Shown piece after piece: positions 2,331 through 62,876 of a stretch of DNA of 64,000 bases; positions within the stretch are counted from its first letter, which is position 1; each line of letters opens with the position of its first letter. The stretch is taken from the NCBI GenBank assembly GCA_964036045.1, contig OZ038378.1, forward strand, positions 198,772,001-198,836,000, read 5' to 3'. The translations under genes were made by a program, and so were the position numbers. The DNA comes from Eutreptiella sp. 'Long Island Sound 2002' (Eukaryota; Protista; Euglenida). The notes under the pieces are model-generated. The model saw only the letters and a list, made by a program, of their open reading frames with translations, did no database searches and was not told where the DNA came from.

Positions 2331-3428
2331 GGGCACATTCATTGCAGACCCTACAACACAGCACCAACAACTTGTGTTCCGTGCAGTACAACAAACTCCG
2401 TGTGCTTCTAACCAGGGATGGCATAAGAATGGGTTTTTTGGGGGGTGGGTGGTGGGGGGGTTAGCTATCTGTCACTTAGTGACACATGGAGAGTGACAGA
2501 TAGGTGGACTTTGTGCTTGAGTGACACATGGACACAATGACAATCAGCCACAATTCCAACACCGAAGGTGCCTGATGGAAATAATTCTGTCTAAAAGAAG
2601 GAGATGATGATTTTTTTTTCAACCCAACTTGTGTATACCCAAAATGCTCAGATTTTTGTGGAGAATTCAAATATGCATGAAAAACGTGAACAAAATTCAC
2701 CCCCCTCCTTTCCCTCACCTGGTCGGGTTCCTCTTGTGTCACTCGTCACTCGTCACGGGGGGGGGGGGGGGGGCTATGTCCACCACTGCTTATCATGGAG
2801 TGTCAACATGCTTCCAATACTTCAATGTTCGGGTTTTGCTTTGTAATTGAGAAAACCTTAGCGCACGGATGACGTCCATTGGACGTGTGGGGGCTCACGT
2901 ATCGGATGGTGTTCCACTGTCCCCCCAAATTTTGCAGCCGCCTCCAATCGTTCGTCCCCCATGGCGGCTGAAGCATCTGTGGCGGCAGTTCGGGTTAGGC
3001 CATTGCTACCCCCCCGGGGGGGGTGGGGGTAGCTTGCCTGCCGGCCCACCTGCTTGTCATAGCAGAAGGTTCAAGGGCGAGAGGCCAATAGGCGCCGCCA
3101 TAGGCTAACAGAGCCAACCACCAAGGCCTTGTGCCAAACGCCCCTCCCTCCCCCGGGCTGGTGGGTGGGTGGGTGGGTGGATGGGTCAAGCGCCAAGAAA
3201 AGTTTGTGTACTTTTCTGATGTGGAGGCGTGGGCCGCCACTGGCCACAGCGCCAAATGCCCCCCCCCCCCCCCTCCCCACGCAGTCCATACACAATGGCC
3301 CGGGGGGGGGGGGGCATGTGCAGCGCCGATAGGTGACCAACCGAGTGCAGGATGAGGGTTTGAAGGGCTGTGGGTTGTGGGGCTGGGCGGCGACGGGCCT
3401 GCGCCCCCCCCCTTCTGCCCCCTTCCAG

Positions 3429-3776
3429 GACGACTTCGTGGGTGGGGAGGGCGTGTGCAGCAGCCTCCTCGACTGCTTCGCCTTTGGGCTGCTCAACGGC
3501 CTCCGCGCCGGCGGCGGGCTGGGGGACCTCCTGCCCGGGAACCGCGGGCGCGCGGTGTTCGACTTTGCGTTCTTCCTCGTGATCGTCGTGATCATCCTCA
3601 ACATCGTCTTCGGGATCATCATCGACACTTTCGCGGAGCTTCGCGACGAGAAGCAGTTCATCGAGAAGGACAACAAGAAGAGCTGCCTCATCTGCGGCCA
3701 GTCCGCCAACTTACTCGACCGCTACATTCCGGGCGGGTTCAGTGTCCATGTCCGGCAATCGCACAACATGTGGCAG
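3429..3776 (+). CDS. ITPR: IP3 receptor (ITPR-type Ca2+ channel), internal exon: pore helix, selectivity filter, last TM helix
   Basis: Translates to ...NGLRAGGGLGDLL...FDFAFFLVIVVIILNIVFGIIIDTFAELRDEKQFIEKDNKKSCLICGQ...HVRQSHNMWQ, matching the IP3R/RyR GGGxGD filter, IIIDTFAELR and CxxC/HxxxxH motifs. Acceptor ttccag at 3423-3428, phase 0. Earlier exons lie upstream of the window. Confidence 0.95.
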
Positions 3777-6700
3777 GCATCCAGCCCCCCCTTTCAGTCC
3801 ATACTTTCCACACCTTTCTTCTCTGCCTTCTCCCTCCCCCGGCCCCCCAACGCCCGCCGGGCATGTGACGCCTCCCAGCGCCTGAAGGGGAGGGGACGCC
3901 GCCAGGGCATGGCACGCAGTCCACTCTCCCCACCAAACGCGCAGTGTGGTGCCCGACCAGCGTTTGCGGAACACCTCGCCTCTATTGCATCCGCACTCCC
4001 GCCCCTCTTTGTACTCCGTCGCCCCATCTCTTCCTCCCTCCCTCGTCCCTACCTCCTCCAAAAGGTCTTTTGGCTGCTGGTACAGTGCAACAGCATTTTT
4101 TCACCACCGCGGAGAACTGGCACCGTGCACCCCGGGGCCGAGGTGCCCAGTGCTAGGACCTGGTTGCCTCAGAGACATGCGTGAGGCGGGGGGGATAATG
4201 TGTAGTGGCATCCTACAACATCGTGGGATTGAATCAAAGTGCCGGCAAAATGCAGCGGTGTACAGGTGCGCAGCACAAACGTTTCCGGCCTGCCCCTTCA
4301 CCAAGTACTAATGAGCAGGGATGACTGGTCGCAAGGTAACACTGAAGGCTGGATGGCAGCCACTGCGACGGTCCTTGGGCAGGCACTTGCGCGTGGCATG
4401 CCGTGCTTCTGTCCCACTTCAACTCAGACCCCCTCCCCTGCCCCCCAGATTTCAAGCCACCGGTGGCCGTGGGCTGGGGTCCCCTTTCAGGGCATGGACT
4501 GCATCACTGCACCATGCCCAGCATACAGTGTTCTAGAAGACTATGCCATACCACCACGTCCATGGAGAGTTATGTGGTGTGCTCAATCGAAATACATACT
4601 GATCATTTATCTAGGACATGCCCAGCATTGGAGGGCTTTAGTGCAAACCCGACGACATAGGGCATGGAAATCAGTCTAGCAATAGAGGGCAAACACACCG
4701 ATTGCAAAGCACAACGGCGCATGCACAACCGTACAGTTTCGTGCCGCTCTAGTAATGCAGTCATGGGGTGGTTTTTGTTTCTTGGTGACCCTCCCGCATG
4801 ATCGCACAGGTCATCGCTGCTCTGGTCATGCGGCCTCGCGCTCGTTGCTGCCCGTGTCTCTCTATTTCTGCTATCTGTTGCTGTGGTGTCCTCACTGTCT
4901 TCTTTCTTTTTTTTTGGTGCGCATTTCATGTTGGTTTTCGTTTGTTGTGGTTGCTCCTGTGAGGAAAACAGGGGGATTCTGTGCACCCCATGAGTGGGGT
5001 GAGAATGGGTGGTTGGGAACACAGAGACCCAAAGGGGATTTGCTGCTCTCGGGAGGGTTTCCAAGTCAGACAACACAGTCAAACGTGGGCAGTCAAACGT
5101 GGGCGCAAAGAGCGTGGCGCATAACCCAACCCAAAGTCAGTCCCCCTTTCAGCTCCAATGATCACAGTGGGAAGATCTCCCCAATGTCTGGGGGATGTGG
5201 CACACAAGGGACCCGTGACGCAGAGAAGAGGAGGCTACGGCTCGGGCCATCACTACACGTGTATCCAGGCTTGCCCAGCCAGGCACTCTCTGGAACCCGC
5301 AGTCATGTCGGCCTTTTGTCCTAAGTCCAGGGTCTTTGCTTGGGCTTTGGACATGCCCAGTTACTTGGTGTGTGACCCCGTCCACCCGATTGCTTGTGTT
5401 GTACAGATCCTGCCCGGAGTGTAGATGGGCAAGGCGCGGAAAATTCATGTACCGGGATGGGAGGCGGGGGTTCGTATCAACCTAGTCTGGAAAGAGGTCT
5501 CATAAAATCGGAATTGCTGCACCATGAGATACCTAAATCAGTGTGTCGTGGGGCTCATTTTCAGTGGTATATGTTGGAGTTGGACTTGCAACCAGCATAC
5601 ACCAGCTGAGACATTCTCACAAATAGTAGGTAGGGTCTTTCTGAGTTGTGCACTGGATGTAGTATTTCTTTCTGAGTTCCATGTGTAGTAGGAGCAAGTC
5701 TTAGCTAGTGGCACATGACACAAGCATAATTCCTACCAAAATGTTGCTGCAAGCTCGGGGCAAGTCTCCACCCCCACCCCCTGGGCCCTCCGAGACTAGT
5801 TTGGGGGCTTCATTGTGGGCGCCTCTTTTGGGGATGCCTTTGCACGCACTGCACATTGCAAAGTTTTAGTATGGCCAAAAATATTGACGCCCTGCTTTGA
5901 ACCTTTTTTCACCGCCGGGAGCAAATGGGGGCCCAGATATATGTTTTATGGTATTCCCCTGTGAGAATTTTTTATCCAGCCACATCACTCCCCTCCTTTT
6001 TGGAGACTAAGGGTTACACAGCCATCCACAAAGCCCCAACTAGCTGGAGTATTTCACCAACACAGAAGATAGACTCGAAAAACACATGAAAATACGAATG
6101 TGATGAAGGGTGTTCATTATGTCACACATGACAGGGCATGAAGGCGATCAAGGTCTAACTTGGAATTGCAGTGAGAACAGTACTGCTAGGTTTCCTAAAT
6201 GTGGCGAAGGCAATGCTATATCTGAATGTCGCACTTGCCATTGAAATATGTGAGGCCTGCGTCGTGTTCATGCTCCTTTGGAGCCATAATATTTCGCACT
6301 GAACCAGCAGGAGATTGATTGGTTCTGGGATGCCTTTTACGCTCGTGCATTGTTTCATGCTCTCAGGAGGTCACGGTCTTCATGGACATGAAATGTGGTT
6401 TCCAGTGTCAAATGTGCACACAGCCCAACATTCCCCTCATTGAACGTTGGAGGGGGAGGTGTCCCGGAAAAGGGGCTCGAACGACCCCCCCCCCCCCCAC
6501 CAAGCATGTGCAGCCGCAGCATGCCGCAGCACCCGTTTTTTGGAGCTGCACATAGGGGTTTGGAAGCATGCCGCAGCATCCAATTTTTTGAGTTCATGTG
6601 TCTGTCTGCCTGTTCCTGCTCTGTCTGCACGGGAGACATTCTGCCTGCCCCGTGTCTCCCCGGTTTGTTTTTATTTGTCTTGTCATGAGTCAGTCATCTG

Positions 6701-6874
6701 CACCAACAACATCCAGTCAACAGCCAACACCAAGCACACCCATTCGGCCCAACAGGGACCGCACATGCTTGCCCCCCACCTCCACAAATGAATTGCCCTC
6801 GACCCCTGCCCTCCATGGGCCGACCCCGCCGCCTCCCCCGCCAGCCCCCTGCCCACCCCTCCCTCGTTTCTCAG

Positions 6875-7379
6875 TACTTATATTTCATGGTCTACCTGAG
6901 CCAAAAGGACCAAGACGAGTACACGGGGCAAGAGTCATATGTGAGCGCCAAACTGCAGCAACATGACATCTCCTTCTTCCCACTGCACAAGTCTCTGGAT
7001 GCCGAAGGCCACGCCCCGGCCTCGGCCGCAGCGGCCGCGGCCGCGGGATCGCCCCCGGTCGCCGCGCCGGAGGAGCGCCGCGAGAGGCCCGAGACCCCGT
7101 TGCTCCGGAGCGAAAGCGCGAGCTCGTTGCGCGAGAGCACGTCGCTCACCAGCGCGTCGCTCAACGAGTTCCGCGAGACGTCCACGTTCTTCCAGCGCGG
7201 CGAGACCTCGTTCTACCCGCAGGAGGGGCTGTACCAGATAGACCCGCTGCAGAGCCTCAGCGAGAAGGTGGTGGAGCGCGTGGAGTACCTCGACTCGAAG
7301 CTGGAGACGCTGGAGAAGTCCCTTGGGAATTTGGCCCAGAAACTGCCAGCCACTCCCTCTGATCCCGTGGCCCCGCCCG
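6875..7379 (+). CDS. ITPR: IP3 receptor, penultimate exon
   Basis: Acceptor tttctcag (AG 6873-6874). YLYFMVYLSQKDQDEYTGQESYV continues HNMWQ|YLYF as in IP3Rs. Donor G|GTATGT at 7380, phase 1. Confidence 0.92.
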
Positions 7380-7420
7380 GTATGTGCATCTGCTGGTGGT
7401 GGAGTGTTGACTCTAACTGC

Positions 7421-7585
7421 GACGGTCTCCCGGCCGAGGGGGGGGGGTCGCCAAGTGACAGTCTCCTGGGGTGGGGTGGGGTGATCATGAGAGTATTTCA
7501 AGGCAAATTGTGGTACCGCCACAGCCTCTAGCCTTGAGAGTTGGGCGCTCTCATGATCCACCTGAGTGACCCCACCAAGGCGTAT
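7421..7585. repeat. Short interspersed repeat with an inverted copy at 22837-23010
   Basis: TCTAGCCTTGAGAGTTGGGCGCTCTCATGATCCACCTGAGTGACCCCACCAAGGCGTAT is present as the reverse complement at 22837-22896. The adjoining module 7630-7700 resembles 3076-3145. Confidence 0.9.
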
Positions 7586-7809
7586 AACAACCGCCCCCCG
7601 CCGCCCCACAGAGGGTCAGAATGAGCAGTGGCGAGAGGCCAATAGGCGCCGCCAAAGGCCAGCAACCTGATGCCCAGGCCTTGTGCCAAACCCCCCCTGC
7701 CCCAACCCCCTCCCCCCACAGCCCCCGCACCCACACTCCACGCCCACTCGCAGGGGTAGCAGTGCCTCCAAGGCCCCAGGGCATTCTCCGTGCTTTTGCC
7801 AAGTGCCGC

Positions 7810-7910
7810 GCCATACCACACCACACCACACCATCCTGCGATGCCATGCCACGCCACGCCACACCGCACCGCACAGCACAGCACAGCACAGCACAGCACC
7901 GCACAGCACA
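7810..7910. repeat. Pentanucleotide microsatellites (ACACC/ACGCC/ACAGC)n
   Basis: Directly visible. Confidence 0.9.
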
Positions 7911-8471
7911 GCCCCCTGCTGGGTACAGGCCCCGAGGGACTGGTTGCCGGGCCTGATATGGCCATACCAGTCCGCGGTGATCCCAGGGCGGCCCTGAACT
8001 GAGGACGCCGTCCGCGGGGAGCCACGGGCCCCCTCGCCTTTGGTGCGCACCATACCACACGCAGCGCGCGCTCAGACACACAGCCCGCCCGTTTTGCATT
8101 ACCCGTGTGCAAGACATCCCGGCCATTGCCTTTTGGTAACAACGCCTTCTGCACACCGTGCCACACCACACCGCACCTATCACCAATCCATCTTCTTTGG
8201 TAGCCACAAAGCCAGCCCCCCTCCCCCGGACCAACACACGCACACCGTGCCGCCCTACACCCTACGCTCCTTACCACCCCCCCCCCCCCCCGCCCCTTCC
8301 AACACACCCCAAGGTCCAGGTCTAGTAACTGGGTGGCCCTGCCGCCAGGCTCAGTGCCGGTGCTCCTGCATGTCCCTCCGTATTGTGTGGTGCTCCCCCG
8401 TTCCAACACACGCACACACGCACATACTCTTCCTTTGCCAAAAACCCCTCCCAGCCCCAACTTTGGATTTA

Positions 8472-9051
8472 CAGGGGGGGGGGGGGGGGCTTCGCCAGGA
8501 GACAACTTGGTTGGTGACGAAATTTTCCCCGCGTAATTTTTTTGCGCAGTTTGACAGTTGGTTGACAGTGACAGTGACAGTGACAGTGACAGTGACAGTG
8601 ACAGTGACAGTGATAGGTTGTCTTGCTTGTCCCATCTCGGGCTCTCTCTGATGCGCCAAATGGTTTGCTTCCCTGACTTCCTCAAGTGTTACCTGCCTAT
8701 GGCTTCTGTGTTTTTAGGAACAGAGCTATGGCACTATGCAATTTGTTTTTTGTCCCAGCCATTGCATTTCGGGCAGCTGTACGCTATGACATGTGTATGA
8801 CATCACGGGTGATGAAATGAAAAGAATGCGGGGCCACCGCAAAAAATACCCAATTGCACACCTGAAAAGATAAAGAGCAAGGCCCAGGAACTCCATATTG
8901 TCCACAAGGAACCAAGGGTTGGGGATGTGACGAAATTGTCCCCTCCAGTGGCCCTGCATCAAAATTGGCGGTGTGACGAAGTTTTCCCCTGACGAAGTTT
9001 TCCCTGTCGAAGTTGTCCCCAGGCGAAGTTCCCCCCCCCCCCCCCTCCCTG
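8472..9051. mobile_element. MITE, Tc1/mariner-type termini
   Basis: TA|CAGGG(G)n-CTTCGCCAGGAGACAACTT at the left end and AAGTTGTCCCCAGGCGAAG-(C)n-CCCTG|TA at the right. TA at 8470-71 and 9052-53. Internal GTGACGAAATTTTCCCC subrepeats; carries a (GACAGT)n array. Confidence 0.8.
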
Positions 9052-9913
9052 TATCACTCTTTCATGTCTGTTGGGGCATGCCAGGACGGCCTTTACCGGC
9101 CAACTATGAATATTTTGCCAAAATATCTAATTCCATAGTGCTTTTTTCTGAGCGCAAAAAAAACAAGAAACGCAAAATTTTTAAATAATCCTGCCTGGGA
9201 GACAGGATTTCGCAAAAAAAATAGGTTAAATAAGTAATTTGGAGAGTGTAGGGTTGGTACTGTTTGTGAACAATCATACAGGTATGATGCAAGGACCCTT
9301 GTTGCTTCACCCATCTGCCCCGACCCTTTCCGCCGACAGCAATGTTCTCTTTGCATTCTTAATGCATAATGCATTCTTCCCAACTTTGCCCTCTGAGGAA
9401 GCCATTCGACGGCGGCAACAAGCTTTGTTGTGCATGGAACACATTTATTTCATCAGGTAGACAACTGCAAGACAACTGATAAGTTTGGTCCCTGCAAGAT
9501 TTGAAGCAAACGGCAGCACTGAGGACACAATATCAAACGCAAAATGGTAGTCGGACAAAAATTAATCGCAAAAAATAAATTTATTTTATGGGTGGAATAC
9601 ACAGGTTTTGGCTCGCAAATTCAAAATAATCGCAAAAAAAAATTATTTTTTGGGCTTTTTAGTGGCAAAAACAAAAATTTTGCTAAATATTAATTGTTTT
9701 TTTTCGCAAAATATTCGTATTTTACAAATATTCGTGTTTGCCCGGTATCAGCGGAGTAGGATCCACTCCCCGAGTCCATGACGGCGGTGGGGCAGGCCCC
9801 CCACCATTCCAGAGGAGAAGGGGGAGGCAGGGACGAGGGGGTGCAGGGTGTAGCCCCGTGCACCCCCTGCCCCGCGAACCCCCGCACCCGTCCCTCCCTC
9901 CCTGCAGCCACAG

Positions 9914-33624: not shown

Positions 33625-34559
33625 GTCCTCCCCTGCCGCGCCCCTGTCGTGCACCCGCGACGCGCTCGCACGTGCACTGCGCTGAAACCGGGCCCGGACC
33701 TGTGGCCCCGGCCCATGGGGCCTCCGCAGTCCATCACCGTGTCACGAACGTACCCCCCGTGTCCAACGAACACTCCTGTTCGGATCGTATTTTGGGGTGA
33801 CCTGATTAATGAGGTAGTGAGGGACCTAATTAGGTACAGGGCTTCAGAACCGAGGTTTCAGGGTAAAGGAGTGGGGACTCCAACAAGGGCTTCTACTCTG
33901 AAAAGTGCCGATTGAAAGCCTCCATGGCATTGTGCTTTGAATGGGCTGGGTATCTTGTGCGTCGGGATGTGTTACAGCGTTTCGCAATATTGTCGCGCGC
34001 ACCGAACGGTGTGTCCAACGAACACTCCTGTTCGAACCGCATTTTTTCAGGACCTGATTGGTTGTTGGGGGGGGGGGGGGTACAATGGGCCGGTGCTGTG
34101 CGGGCGCTTCCCCGTGACTACGTGCCGGTCATGCGGTGTCCTTCTCTGCGCCTGGGACGCGTAGATGACGCGCCTGCCAGCGCGTACCCGGCCCCACTGT
34201 GCACCCACCACTGCGCTTGCGATGCGCCCACGCCAGCCCTTCTTCGCGGACACTTTGCACCAGGGCTGTCCTTAAAAAGCCAGATTTGTTTTTTTTTGCC
34301 AATTACACCCCTTAAGGACAGCCCGCAGGGACCACGAACCGCCAGCCGCCAACGCCAACCGCCACCAACCGCCAAGCACCAAGCGCCGCCAACCGCCGTC
34401 AACCGCCAACCGCCACCGATCTCCAACCGCCAACCGCCGAGAAGGGTCCATGACCATGAAGCAGACAACGTCCCCGTTCATGTTGGCGTTACGAAAGTCT
34501 TCCTTTTTCATCCTTCTGGACAGGCCTGCTCTGCACGTGCCCGCGGGTTCTGTTTGCAG

Positions 34560-34909
34560 GGGCCGACGAGCGGAAGTACATAATCAACGTCTCTGCGATG
34601 GAGGGGCAGTTTTACCGCTACAAGAACACGACGCACCCGCACACCAACATGGCGAAGGCGGCGCTGAACATGCTGACGCGGACCTCCGCGGCGGACTATG
34701 CGCAGAACAAGATCTACATGAACAGTGTGGACACGGGCTGGATCACCGACGAGAGTCCGCTGCCGAAGCAGAACCGCAAAATTGCAAAGGACCAGCTGTT
34801 CACTCCGTTGGACGAGCAGGACGCGGCGGCGCGCGTGCTGGACCTGATCTACACCCAGAGTGAGGTCTTTGGCAGGTTTTGGAAGGATTTCCAGATTATT
34901 CCATGGTAA
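34560..34909 (+). CDS. Atypical SDR, exon 5 (last)
   Basis: Acceptor tttgcag|GG. KYIINVSAMEGQFYRYKNTTHPHTNMAKAALNMLTRTSA...MNSVDTGWITDE...RFWKDFQIIPW, then TAA. The five exons sum to 1755 nt, an uninterrupted 584-aa frame. Confidence 0.95.
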
Positions 34910-35042
34910 ATGTGGCACCGTGTGTGTGTGTGTGCTTCTGTGTGTGTGTGTATGTGTGTGTTTTCCTGCTTGCAGGGGTGGACACGACAAGTGGACCGCC
35001 CCACCCGTTGGTGCCTTCTGACCGTGTACCTGCTGTACTACA

Positions 35043-35118
35043 GAAAGGCGCCTAGCCGCATGCTCTTCCACTCCATCTTCTACTTTCTTACGGCCTGACG
35101 AGATTCGTTAGCGACCAG
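35043..35118 (+). ncRNA. Hammerhead ribozyme core, type II permutation, unit 1 (acceptor-containing form)
   Basis: GAAA 35043-46; palindrome AGGCGCCT 35046-53; CUA cleavage triplet (after 35054); stem I GCCG 35055-58/CGGC 35091-94; CTGACGA-G 35095-35102. Preceded by CTGAC and a CAG acceptor (AG 35042-43). Confidence 0.7.
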
Positions 35119-35174
35119 TGCAGTGCTCTGTCTGTCTGCCTGTTCGTCTCGCTTCAATCGTGTGTGTGTGTGTG

Positions 35175-35199
35175 TTTCCGAGTGTCTAATTGTTTTTCG
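35175..35199 (+). other. Genomic relic of the euglenid spliced-leader exon
   Basis: TTTCCGAGTGTCTAATTGTTTTTCG versus the Euglena SL as I recall it (ACTTTCTGAGTGTCTATTTTTTTTCG): about 3 differences over the 3' 24-25 nt. Joined directly to AAAGGCGCC, where sibling copies have CAG|AAAGGCGCC. Confidence 0.85.
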
Positions 35200-35263
35200 A
35201 AAGGCGCCTCGCTGCAATGACAACCATGTTTTCTATGGGGGCCCGACGAGTTGTTTTGACCAG
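35199..35263 (+). ncRNA. Hammerhead core, unit 2 (SL-joined form, core mutated)
   Basis: C-GAAA 35198-35202, AGGCGCCT, CUC (after 35210), short stem GCT/GGC, inner stem CCAT/ATGG. The core reads CCGACGA (35243-49) instead of CTGACGA. Confidence 0.65.
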
Positions 35264-35878
35264 CCCGTCTGCGATCTTCAGTGGGTCGGTGTTCTTGGTC
35301 TCGTTCACTACAGTAGTGTTGTGTAGTGTGTGTCAGGCCTTTGCTTTGTGGCTGGTTGATACTATACCAAGGGGGGGGGGAGGGTCTGAGGATGGTGGGT
35401 GGGTTTTTGTCTGGGTTTTCCCCGATTTTGGGGAAAATGCAGGTACCCCCCCTAGGCGGGGGGGGTGTCCGCTTTTTTGGGTGGGTGGGTGGGTCGCTGA
35501 GCTTGGTAGACCTCCAAAGTCGTTCATGGGCCGAGGCACATTGTGCCACATGGGGATGCTGCCACTTTGTTCAGACCTGTTTTGCTTTACACTTTTTCAC
35601 TTCAGTCTGTACATGATCAGGGACTGTCAGTGACCAGTGGAAGTAGCACAGGTCAACCAAAAGAAGGGTGTGAGTACAAACCCTGTTGCGCACATTTTCA
35701 GCACCTGCTATGGAGTGGTCAACCTGAATTTGTTTCATCCGAAATTGCTCTGTGACCCCCCCCTCAGGGTATCCGGCAGGCGGGCGGGTGGGTCTGAGAG
35801 TGGGTGTGGGTGGGTCAGCCAACATCCTGGGAGGGCCAATTTAACCCCCCCCCCACACTATCACTAAGCAAAGGCCTG

Positions 35879-35915
<37 letters not shown>

Positions 35916-36634
35916 CTCCAGGAATTCTATGGGTCTGGGGAGGGCAGGAGGGGGTGTTACTGCACTTATGCACGCCAGCACTCCGTCGCACTCCGTCCAA
36001 CTGCAACGTACCGCAGGACGGCTGGGGCTGCTCTGCAGCTCCTGAGGGGGTTCCTCCATCCGGTTTTCTTGCGTTGTTCTTGTCTCGCAGTTCTCAACAT
36101 GTGTGTGTGTGTGTGTGTGTGTGTGCGTGCGTGAACAAAACAAGGTACGGTTAAGGCAGTTTACTGTATGAGTTACTCGATGCCTGTGAAGAAGTGCATC
36201 ATTCTTGCTAAAGTTCAAAGCTGGCTAAAGGAAAAGGCGGCATGGCGGGGAGGTGAGTACAGTTCGTGGGTAGGGCCACAGAATGCAGCGCTGCACTCAT
36301 ACTCCCCTGTCTGGAATGATGATTTTGCGGCGCTGGAGGTACTGCGTGGGGCCTGTTGTACACAGGCCGACTGTGTGCGTGTATCCCCCCGGTAACGGGT
36401 GGTATGAGTATTACTTGCTGATTTGAACCATTAGATTTAGTTGGTTGGGCTGGGAGAAGTACAGGGACCTGAGGTGAGGGCTCCAACACATTCCCGCAGC
36501 CAGATGCGGCGCTTAAATGTCATTTCACTCTGTCCTTCACAGGCCCTTGGCTTAGCGCTCAGCGCGGCTGCCGAGGGCTGAAGACGGTAGAGATCGGGTG
36601 CAGGATGTGCCTCTTCCTCTCACCCTGTACTGCA

Positions 36635-36710
36635 GAAAGGCGCCTAGTCGCTGATGGTCATGTCTTTTGTTTGACTGTTTGCGGCCTGACGAGAATCTAC
36701 TTACGACCAG
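36635..36710 (+). ncRNA. Hammerhead core, type II, unit 3 (acceptor-containing form)
   Basis: Pyrimidine tract + CAG (AG 36634-35); GAAA 36635-38; AGGCGCCT; CUA (after 36646); stem I GTCGC 36647-51/GCGGC 36681-85, inner GTCA/TGAC; CTGACGA-G 36686-93. Confidence 0.75.
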
Positions 36711-36999
36711 TGCCTGTGCCTGTCCTGTTCTTGCTGGTTCTGGGCTTTGGTCGCTTTGCGTCATCCACGTGTGTGTGCGTGACTGGTCGGTATCACAAGC
36801 CTCGGTGGGCCTGAAGCAGGGCAGGGGAGGGGCAGGGCCTGACTTTCCCAATTTACGCATGTGACGAGCAGAAACGTTTAATTGTTGCTCTGTCCCGTGC
36901 GGGCCTCTGGTCCAGCGCAGCTGCCTGGGGCTATCCTCGAGTTCGAGGCCATGGTGGTGGGTCAGGATGCGTGCCTCTCTGCCCTCCGCCTGCTCTGCA

Positions 37000-37076
37000 G
37001 AAAGGCGCCTATTGGCGGCGAACATGCTTTGTCTTGTTTGACGACCCAACTGACGAGGATTCTGACACTCGGAAAC
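37000..37076 (+). ncRNA. Hammerhead core, type II, unit 4 (acceptor form with perfect anti-SL arm)
   Basis: Pyrimidine tract + CAG (AG 36999-37000); GAAA 37000-03; AGGCGCCT; CUA (after 37011); stem I TTGG 37012-15/CCAA 37046-49 (fully covaried relative to units 1 and 3), inner CGAACA/TGTTTG; CTGACGA-G 37050-57; GACACTCGGAAAC 37064-76 is the reverse complement of 35174-35186. Confidence 0.8.
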
Positions 37077-37333
37077 CGCGTTCTGCCCGTTTCTCTTGCA
37101 ATGTTGTCTGTGTATGTGTATGTGTATGTGTGTGGGTGGGTGGGTGGATGGGTGCGTGTGCGCGTACACGTGCAGTCCCCACTGGTGACAGACAAAGGGC
37201 AGGCAAATGCGGGCCGTCCGAGTGCGATGCAGGTTGCGATGGCTGATGCGGTCCCTGAGGAGCCATGATCGCTAATGGGCACACTGTTATATATGATCCA
37301 CGACAATGAACGGAGTCGGAGGATAGGTCAGTG

Positions 37334-62586: not shown

Positions 62587-62876
62587 TTAAATACAAATTG
62601 CTTATTGATTCCGACCTTCGCAATTGATTTGAGAAGCCCCCAAAACTTGACCTCAGGCAAAATCAACACAGTCAACCACGAAGCAAATGGAATCTCTTGT
62701 GTCCCTCGATGTACCGGTTTCAACTCTACTACAGAGTCCTCATCAGCTGCAAACGGAGGGACACAAAAGATTCCGTTTGCTTCGTGTTTGACTGTGTTGA
62801 TTCTGATTGAGGTCAAGTTTTGGAGGCTTCTCAAATCAATTACAAGGGTTAGAATCAATAGGCAATTTGTATTTAA
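62587..62876. repeat. Imperfect inverted repeat, 121-nt arms with a 48-nt spacer
   Basis: 62587-62707 (ttaaatacaaattgc...gtgtccctc) is the imperfect reverse complement of 62756-62876 (gagggacac...gcaatttgtatttaa). Confidence 0.95.
62707..62756 (-). ncRNA. Type I hammerhead core, partly decayed, forming the loop of a long hairpin
   Basis: The minus strand reads CTGATGA-G-GACTCT-GTAGT-AGAGTT-GAAA-CCGG-TA. Core at 62746-62740, 6-bp stem II, GAAA 62721-62718, palindromic ACCGGT stem III, GUA cleavage after 62712. Proximal stem I has two mismatches and stem II has an extra G. Confidence 0.7.

Follow-up and report, generated by a model that had tools for sequence, protein, structure and literature searches.

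Hammerhead ribozymes of eukaryotic repeats, as in the Schistosoma Sm-alpha short interspersed nuclear element (SINE), newt satellite 2, plant and animal retrozymes and Penelope-like elements, are of type I or III and complete in cis. Here we describe a hammerhead-type element from a 64-kb stretch of euglenid DNA (contig OZ038378.1; "the window" below means this whole stretch). Four units of it lie within 35010-37080, a region 3' of the last exon of a short-chain-dehydrogenase-like gene (open reading frame (ORF) 34598-34909). Like the known eukaryotic hammerhead repeats, the element is short, high-copy, non-coding and clustered, with a short palindromic stem III suggesting dimeric action. Unlike them, it has the type II order, no helix II in cis and a (GT)n tail, and it is trans-spliced inside the core. 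It very probably carries a hammerhead-type motif under selection, be it completed by the spliced leader (SL), completed in another way, or kept as an inactive or exapted relic. That the SL completes the ribozyme is plausible on sequence grounds, though somewhat short of probable.

Type II hammerheads are known from bacteria and archaea, whereas those of eukaryotic repeats are nearly all type I (PMC3088659). The euglenid element has the same order of parts and the same core consensus as the type II class (PMC3088659; Rfam Hammerhead_II), natural members of which have a stem II as short as 1-2 bp (PMC3088659). It departs from this class in two respects. Both strands of helix II are encoded in known type II hammerheads, whereas in the euglenid element the 5' strand is absent from the DNA and a splice acceptor is found instead. 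Most type II members also have a pseudoknot between loop I and the 3' tail, which was undetectable in the euglenid element, as was any Rfam match.

Two further systems resemble single aspects of the element. Martick et al. are said to have described in 2008 a discontinuous hammerhead in the 3' untranslated regions (UTRs) of mammalian Clec2 genes, with both halves in one transcript. The euglenid element, too, would have non-contiguous parts in an RNA polymerase II transcript, but its missing strand would come from another RNA by spliceosomal trans-splicing. Slamovits and Keeling reportedly found in 2008 relict SLs in dinoflagellate genes, and retroposed trans-spliced mRNAs. As in that case, a genomic SL at a former acceptor records reverse transcription in the euglenid copies, some of which have degenerate SL relics upstream. 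Unlike that case, the retro-copied RNA is euglenid, non-coding and SINE-like, and the SL-bearing copies are selectively defective in the ribozyme core.

In the window, AAAGGCGCCT had four exact matches, all on the plus strand (35044, 35200, 36636 and 37001), and CTGACGAG had three (35095, 36686 and 37050). Units 1, 3 and 4, likewise on the plus strand, read pyrimidine tract, CAG, AAAGGCGCCU, A, stem I hairpin, CUGACGA and G. The core of unit 1 spans 35043-35102 (G12AAA-GGCGCC-U, H17 = A 35054, stem I GCCG/CGGC at 35055-58/35091-94, CUGACGA 35095-35101, G10.1 35102), with predicted cleavage after 35054. That of unit 3 spans 36635-36693 (H17 = A 36646, stem I GUCGC/GCGGC at 36647-51/36681-85 plus 8 more pairs, CUGACGA 36686-36692, G10.1 36693) and that of unit 4 spans 37000-37057 (H17 = A 37011, stem I UUGG/CCAA at 37012-15/37046-49, CUGACGA 37050-37056, G10.1 37057). 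Unit 2 (35200-35335, plus strand) is diverged; it contains CCGACGAG, with AAAGGCGCCU, H17 = C 35210, stem I GCU/GGC and an inactivated core, CCGACGA, at 35243-35249. An earlier, sequence-only reading of this DNA had proposed four related units in type II order, each with CTGACGA. The units and their order were borne out, and the consensus core was present in three of the four. Their alignment covered ~150 nt with a mean column identity of 62%, and nhmmer and BLAST of the window returned no copy beyond these four.

Further copies were collected by using ORFs through the repeat as protein queries, retrieving the encoding contigs (one long-read ENA assembly and one JGI contig) and running profile searches. 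This yielded 30 further copies, or 34 DNA-verified copies together with those of the window, in >10 clades that share only ~75% identity outside the conserved block. Used as a protein query, the antisense ORF of unit 4 gave no match. The family has no conserved ORF, and the "proteins" found were frame-dependent ORFs through the repeat. At the level of protein translation, ~30 further acceptor-type ORF copies mostly kept ...PTDED..., which encodes CUGACGAGGA.

Read directly across all clades, the order of elements was II-GAAA-III-H-I-CUGANGA-II, i.e., type II, with stems I and III closed and stem II open. CUGANGA stood directly 3' of stem I and matched the consensus in 26/34 copies, N7 being C in 22, U in 3 and A in 1. 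Copies keeping the other six positions differed only at N7, and so did, within CUGANGA, a paralogous pair (L016:6851 with CUGAUGA, L023:10370 with CUGACGA). GAAA, U16.1 and H17 (A, C or U) were conserved across copies. The A15.1-U16.1 pair was kept in 18/20 aligned copies, within GAAA-GGCGCC-U-H, whose NUH triplet lies directly 5' of stem I, and position 10.1 was G in 32/34.

Stem I directly adjoins H17 and C3 and has undergone compensatory changes between clades. Its variants were UUGG/CCAA, GCCG/CGGC, GCCA/UGGC, GUCGC/GCGGC, GCC/GGC, GUGC-U-GUGUU/GGCAC-U-GCAC, GUGCGGUCA/UGACUGUGC and GUGCAGG/UUUGCAC. In a 20-copy alignment (A2), 96.4% of the cells were paired and four of the five pairs had changes on both sides. 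The covariation score was 0.461, compared with 0.171 in shuffles (0/500 reached it), and dropped to 0.03-0.05 when the partner was slid by 1-3 columns. The covariation first noticed in the window units is thus upheld by the 30 further copies. Taken together, the core constraints are those of a hammerhead and are hard to explain by another function.

The layout might instead belong to a conserved first exon or 5' UTR, or to a small-RNA gene of a multicopy family (e.g., box C/D-like), with a chance match to the hammerhead; we consider this very improbable. Eleven core positions in exact register plus a covarying helix in >10 clades are far beyond chance. As a null set, metagenome contigs were scanned with the DNA pattern GAAAGGCGCCTA...CTGACGAGR, which returned only 13 bacterial chance matches, and chance co-occurrences of both motifs in metagenomes (n=9) had 0-3 bp of stem I. 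Taken singly, it is true, neither AAAGGCGCCT nor CTGACGAG was commoner in the window than in shuffles; the significance of the units rests on the fixed register of both motifs together with the covariation, as confirmed in the 30 further copies. The elevated depth of the units in RNA-type libraries would also suit a small-RNA gene, as would C-box-like and D-box-like strings in unit 3 (UGAUGG...CUGA). No tRNA, Rfam family or conserved ORF was found in the units, however, nor did we see a conserved coding frame or any stable, processed small RNA whose ends bear no relation to H17. The box C/D small nucleolar RNA reading of unit 3 was rejected, the C-box-like string being absent from the other clades. 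A type I or III reading, which needs a stem II hairpin and GAAA 3' of CUGACGA, was also rejected; these parts were absent, and a GGAAAC in unit 4 was not conserved.

Two side observations concern the core and stem I. In nearly all clades, the stem I loop retains a palindrome, ACAUG/CAUG (e.g., 37024-37028 and 36660-36664), which might mediate loop-loop contacts between units. The identical inactivating change U4->C (CCGACGA) occurred in three copies of three clades, namely unit 2 (35243), L016:10433 and L023:10788.

The part of the core that distinguishes the element is the missing strand of helix II. In about 25/26 acceptor-type copies, a YAG following a C/U-rich tract lies directly at G12. 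In window units 1, 3 and 4, GAAA shares its G with the pyrimidine-tract CAG, and therefore position 11.1 is A; with A at 11.1, acceptor-type copies cannot pair this position with the nearly invariant G10.1. We found no consistent helix beside G12 in cis, either by eye, by RNAduplex (own 45-nt upstream sequence against the arm) or by RNAalifold (18 full-length copies). Stem II closed by G10.1-C11.1 was therefore absent from the DNA and from unspliced RNA; it appeared only in the modelled or retro-copied SL-joined form, with ...UUC-G before AAA. The sequence-only reading had made both points, that a CAG supplies the G of GAAA and that stem II cannot form in cis, and both hold.

The AG at G12 is used for SL addition, as recorded in the genome itself. 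Five genomic copies have an SL, intact or decayed, fused at the acceptor position: unit 2, L016:6363, L022:~4440, L024:10215 and L025:10245. In unit 2, as had been claimed, an SL-like 26-mer, GTTTCCGAGTGTCTAATTGTTTTTCG (35174-35199, plus strand), replaces the upstream sequence at the site where other units have the acceptor AG. It directly follows the (GT)n tail of unit 1 and was the sole such match in the window (0 expected by chance); a DNA contig of run X7 covers its junction with unit 2 (35148-35292) with 0 differences. In all five, the SL abuts AAAGG or a decayed AAAGG. As retrocopies of trans-spliced RNA, they show the AG at G12 to be a working acceptor. Contigs of the related assembly carry the canonical Euglena gracilis-type leader TTTCTGAGTGTCTATTTTTTTTC, matched by the published E. 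gracilis SL primer ACACTTTCTGAGTGTCTATTTTTTTTCG (PMC5654406). The case had depended on the real leader resembling 35175-35199; the two differ at a few internal positions but share the UUUUCG end, so the case is not refuted on this count.

None of the five SL-fused copies had an intact core, compared with 19/26 acceptor-type copies (Fisher one-sided p=0.0047). The lesions affected G12, U4, G8, A9, A13 or U16.1, or had deleted the cleavage site; in L022:~4440, which has a near-perfect leader, a 10-nt stretch covering A13-H17 is missing. Broken cores in all SL-fused copies would be expected if intact RNA in the SL form cleaves itself and is hence not copied at full length.

The leader was also fused in the genome to sequences other than this repeat (L018:19399-19425 and L014:383-400, TTTCTGAGTGTCTATTTTTTTTCCGATTTCC... 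and TTTCTGAGTGTCTTTTCGTTTGG...). This genome thus retro-copies trans-spliced RNAs in general. In place of ...TTTTCG, three of the SL junctions had ...TTTTCC, and two had ...ATTGTTTTTCG, which may reflect variants of the SL RNA. At L022:4380-4470 and L014:195-225 we observed SL relics with an expanded internal (TG)n, e.g., TTTCTG(TG)nTCTATTTTTATC beside a perfect SL. They suggest that some of the (GT)n arrays flanking units arose from the GAGTGTC part of retro-copied leaders.

We propose the following mechanism. Behind the missing 5' strand of helix II, the core would read G12AA-A15.1 GGCGCC U16.1-H17, followed past the cleavage site by the stem I hairpin-C3UGANGA9-G10.1 R... The primary transcript, with A at 11.1 and no helix II, should be inactive. 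Trans-splicing would remove everything through the acceptor AG and join the leader ...UUUUUUUUCG to AAAGGCGCC. As the AG leaves with the outron, the spliced RNA would read ...UUUUUUUUC-G followed by AAAGGCGCC. The leader would in this way supply G12, C11.1 to pair with G10.1, and U's as partners for the purines 10.2 and 10.3. Its 5' half would, in the largest clade, also pair with an 11-12 nt anti-SL arm just downstream. Once helix II is assembled, cleavage after H17 would release a capped 37-nt SL+AAAGGCGCCUH fragment and a 5'-OH body. We advance tentatively, as a possibility still some way from probable, the complete scheme in which trans-splicing is the assembly step of the ribozyme (through ...UUC-G at the SL 3' end and the 5' half on the anti-SL arm), only the trans-spliced form cuts itself, and the process is recorded as core-dead SL-fused retrocopies.

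Stem III would involve a second unit. The 8-nt perfect palindrome AGGCGCCU could form an intermolecular helix, and two units would probably share helix III in this way, giving a double hammerhead. This recalls the double hammerheads of avocado sunblotch viroid (ASBVd) and newt transcripts (cited in PMC3088659): stem III with its loop is a palindrome, through which two copies could build one long helix III. Unlike in these systems, dimerisation of the euglenid element would not supply the missing strand of helix II.

Several features of the copies fit the leader. G10.1 is conserved although its partner in cis is A. Position 10.2 is a purine in 32/34 copies and 10.3 is often A; both would pair with the U run and 3' ...UUC of the SL. 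A stem II of 2 bp is common among natural hammerheads, and dimers arise through a palindromic stem III (PMC3088659). In the largest clade, that of unit 4, the anti-SL arm GACACUC(A/G)GAA(C/A) starts seven nt after A9 and makes 11-12 contiguous pairs with the 5' half of the leader. In unit 4 itself (37058-37076, plus strand), a proximal arm GAUUCU precedes the anti-SL segment GACACUCGGAAAC (37064-37076). This segment matches SL positions UUUCUGAGUGUC as their complement, perfectly in the unit 2 variant and with one G-U in the canonical SL. Exact Watson-Crick runs of the arm were first scored against the full SL, where A-runs and the arms inflated the tail of the null, and then redone with the SL 5' half only. 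A run of 11-12 bp had P about 0.0015-0.003 per random 45-mer of the genome, a null still inflated by the arms themselves. Three other clades had 7-8 bp of anti-SL pairing, at other registers. Folded in silico, the SL form had the leader wrapped or clamped around the element. As a side observation, the anti-SL arm of all unit-4-type copies (37077-37100 in unit 4) is followed by an SL-like string CCUGAGUUGUG (cf. CUGAGUGUC in the leader). This string is able to pair with the arm (ACACUC with GAG-U-UGU), which it could thereby sequester before the real leader attaches.

A working hammerhead could also receive helix II from elsewhere, the AG at G12 being a coincidence or serving only for capping. 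We regard this as unlikely. Helix II might then come from two units paired via the AGGCGCCU palindrome or from the arm pairing with its own upstream CAGGAUGUGCC module, or the core might tolerate G10.1-A11.1; cleavage would then serve, as in other retroelements with a hammerhead, to process transcripts that are multimeric or arise by read-through. No upstream strand pairs beside G12 in any clade, however (11.1 is A, and 11.2-11.4 mismatch 10.2-10.4), RNAalifold shows no shared long-range helix, and a dimer needs helix II as much as a monomer does. Energies as low as -23 to -26 kcal/mol were obtained for the duplex between arm and own upstream sequence (in L015, L018:10062 and window unit 4), but it is not conserved and is poor in L017 and L014. 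Such a hammerhead would account for a core and stem I constrained in all clades, including those without the anti-SL arm, and for a perfect stem III palindrome in clustered copies, as double hammerheads are known. It would also agree with eukaryotic repeat hammerheads normally acting in cis on long transcripts (PMC3088659). It leaves unexplained why YAG is kept at 11.1 while 10.1 is G, and why the five SL-fused copies are broken.

A number of results weigh against completion by the SL or against a ribozyme as such. The clades of units 1 and 3 have intact cores but CGACCAGUGCC in place of the anti-SL arm, and there the SL would give only 2-3 bp. The arm in effect counts as a single inherited event, at a level of about 1e-3, and in some copies it pairs better with its own upstream CAGGAUGUGCC than with the SL. 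The broken cores of the SL-fused copies would also be explained if these copies are simply older, as they may be. As a monomer stem III, AGGCGCCU has 2 bp and a 4-nt GCGC loop, and its invariance among copies leaves no covariation signal. An Rfam scan had been suggested by the sequence-only reading; with the models Hammerhead_1, 3, II, HH9 and HH10, there was no hammerhead at the gathering score in the whole window, nor at E<=10 in 34900-37200. The best complementarity between loop I and the 3' tail was 3-5 bp, not above that of shuffled tails (13 intact copies). In the SL form, the hammerhead-compatible fold lay 10-13 kcal/mol above the nearest-neighbour minimum free energy (MFE), and a shifted UUUUCG/CGAGGA pairing competed with it; this energy test is uninformative, because the model ignores the tertiary pairs of the core. 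RNA-library contigs (runs X5, X12 and X4) pass through the AG unspliced. Neither an SL-AAAGG junction nor a cleavage end was visible in these contigs, which cannot show rare forms; among the contig loose ends listed, those at 36995-36998 were other genomic upstream sequences and not SL.

Such results would fit an inactive relic or an exapted motif, in which the family derives from an ancestral element with a hammerhead but the block YAG-AAAGGCGCCUH-hairpin-CUGACGAG now serves another purpose: a strong trans-splice acceptor cassette, a site bound by a protein, or a structure recognised by a partner reverse transcriptase. The anti-SL arm would then recruit the SL ribonucleoprotein to the acceptor or mask the capped leader, and would not build helix II; an arm complementary to the SL 5' half suits an SL-recruiting element equally well. 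Consistent with this are the absent Rfam match and cis helix II, a stem III too short for a monomer, a hammerhead-compatible fold far from the MFE, and RNA contigs with neither cleavage nor SL junction. We nevertheless hold a relic to be rather unlikely. It does not predict that N7 varies (C, U, A) in otherwise consensus cores, that G10.1 is invariant, that the register of UH, stem I and CUGANGA is exact across clades ~75% identical, or that A15.1-U16.1 is maintained. We know of no SL-dependent recruitment by base pairing in SL trans-splicing.

The proposal that the SL switches the ribozyme on therefore stands in part. In its favour are G10.1, the purine at 10.2, the anti-SL arm of the unit-4 clade and the broken cores of the SL-fused copies; units 1 and 3, armless with 2-3 bp, and RNA contigs that are unspliced and without junction or cleavage product speak against it. 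We describe the element as a hammerhead-type motif in a SINE-like element and not as a proven hammerhead, because stem II is not closed in the encoded RNA and self-cleavage itself is predicted.

To assess copy number, contigs of four public runs were mapped on 34450-37300. Run X7 behaved as genomic DNA, with a depth of ~8-11 on the gene, intron and unique spacers. Its summed depth on the units was 3000-9400, compared with ~9 on unique sequence, corresponding to ~300-1000 copies with >=90% identity. The units are thus no local system but belong to a SINE-like repeat of several hundred copies. Its X7 similarity boundaries lay at the junction of CAG and AAAGG (36995-36998) and in (GT)n (35175-35177 and 36781). 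The copies recovered were spread over >10 contigs of the related assembly, typically clustered, with up to six within a few kb. Every copy ended in a (GT)n tail, 5'-truncated copies starting inside the unit lay directly after a (GT)n array (L016:7818 and L022:4584), and new copies lay immediately 3' of an older copy's tail. The units thus belong to a short, non-coding SINE-like retroposon of a euglenid of the E. gracilis type, integrating at or next to (GT)n arrays, which gives rise to the clusters. The search for a SINE head derived from tRNA, 7SL or 5S, with an internal RNA polymerase III promoter, was negative: the units gave no tRNA and no Rfam family. Transcription is probably by read-through plus trans-splicing.

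The small RNA-type libraries X5 and X12, of a related label, had summed depths of 30-300 on the units and essentially none on the gene or on other nearby high-copy repeats. The units therefore seem to be transcribed. In an estuary metatranscriptome (runs X1-X4) we further observed a 151-nt contig identical to 36941-37091, i.e., unit 4 with 60 nt of unspliced upstream sequence; this organism, or its nucleic acid, was therefore in the estuary sample.

The remaining parts of the units are all on the plus strand. Upstream of unit 1 (34910-35043) are a (GT)n array (34920-34961), the 5' module, a pyrimidine tract and the CAG acceptor (AG 35042-35043), homologous to the upstream parts of the unit-1-type copies L016:10433 and L021:10085-. 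The 3' domain of unit 1 (35103-35176) lacks an anti-SL arm but contains the CGACCAGUGC motif and the (GT)n tail (35161-35176); similarity to other copies stops at 35175-35177. The upstream part of unit 3 (36495-36635) holds a covarying hairpin, GCCCUUGGC (36543-51) with GCCGAGGGC (36570-78), the CAGGAUGUGCC motif, and a pyrimidine tract followed by the CAG acceptor (AG 36634-36635). Its 3' domain (36694-36792) likewise lacks the anti-SL arm; it has a CGACCAG...UGGUCG hairpin and a (GT)n tail that is degenerate, with the boundary at 36781. Unit 4 has upstream (36860-37000) a hairpin of 36903-10 with 36924-31, CAGGAUGCGUGCC, a pyrimidine tract and the CAG acceptor (AG 36999-37000), and similarity to other copies starts at 36995-36998. 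Its tail (37077-37160) reads GUGCCCGUUU...GCAAU and is degenerate and GT-rich.

Full-length copies share an upstream hairpin with covarying arms, ~60-110 nt 5' of the acceptor (36543-36578 and 36903-36931 in the window; L017, L019, L023). The arm pairs included GCCCUUGGC/GCCGAGGGC, GCCUCUGGC/GCCAGAGGC and GCCUCUGC/GCAGAGGC, and another YAG precedes the hairpin. Between units 2 and 3, stretches rich in G-runs and C-runs (35314-35600 and 35698-35890) had a summed depth of up to 8600 in the DNA run, compared with ~9 for unique sequence, and were nearly absent from the RNA-type libraries that hold the units. Elsewhere in the window, on the minus strand of 62690-62765, the tip of a ~290-nt inverted repeat reads ...GUUUGCAG-CUGAUGA-GGACUCUGUAGUAGAGUU-GAAA-CCGGU-A followed by CAUCGAGGGACAC. 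The layout resembles that of a type I hammerhead, and stem III is once more short and palindromic (ACCGGU); it had no Rfam hammerhead match, only a weak microRNA-precursor-like match for the long hairpin.

In the full-text literature we found no report of hammerheads in Euglena or euglenids, of euglenid retroposons with SL, or of a ribozyme completed by trans-splicing. As far as this search shows, the element would be the first eukaryotic repeat with a type II arrangement and the first element of hammerhead type found for euglenids, and its missing helix II strand matches a trans-splice acceptor in position exactly, to the nucleotide. If the SL does close helix II, the ribozyme would be switched on by an RNA-processing step. 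Spliceosomal trans-splicing would thereby be linked with RNA catalysis in a new way, and nature would offer a design for split ribozymes that assemble conditionally. Should the ribozyme be dead, the units still define an abundant (GT)n-targeting retroposon, which provides an annotation marker for a very repeat-rich genome and direct genomic evidence of retro-copied trans-spliced non-coding RNAs in Euglena.

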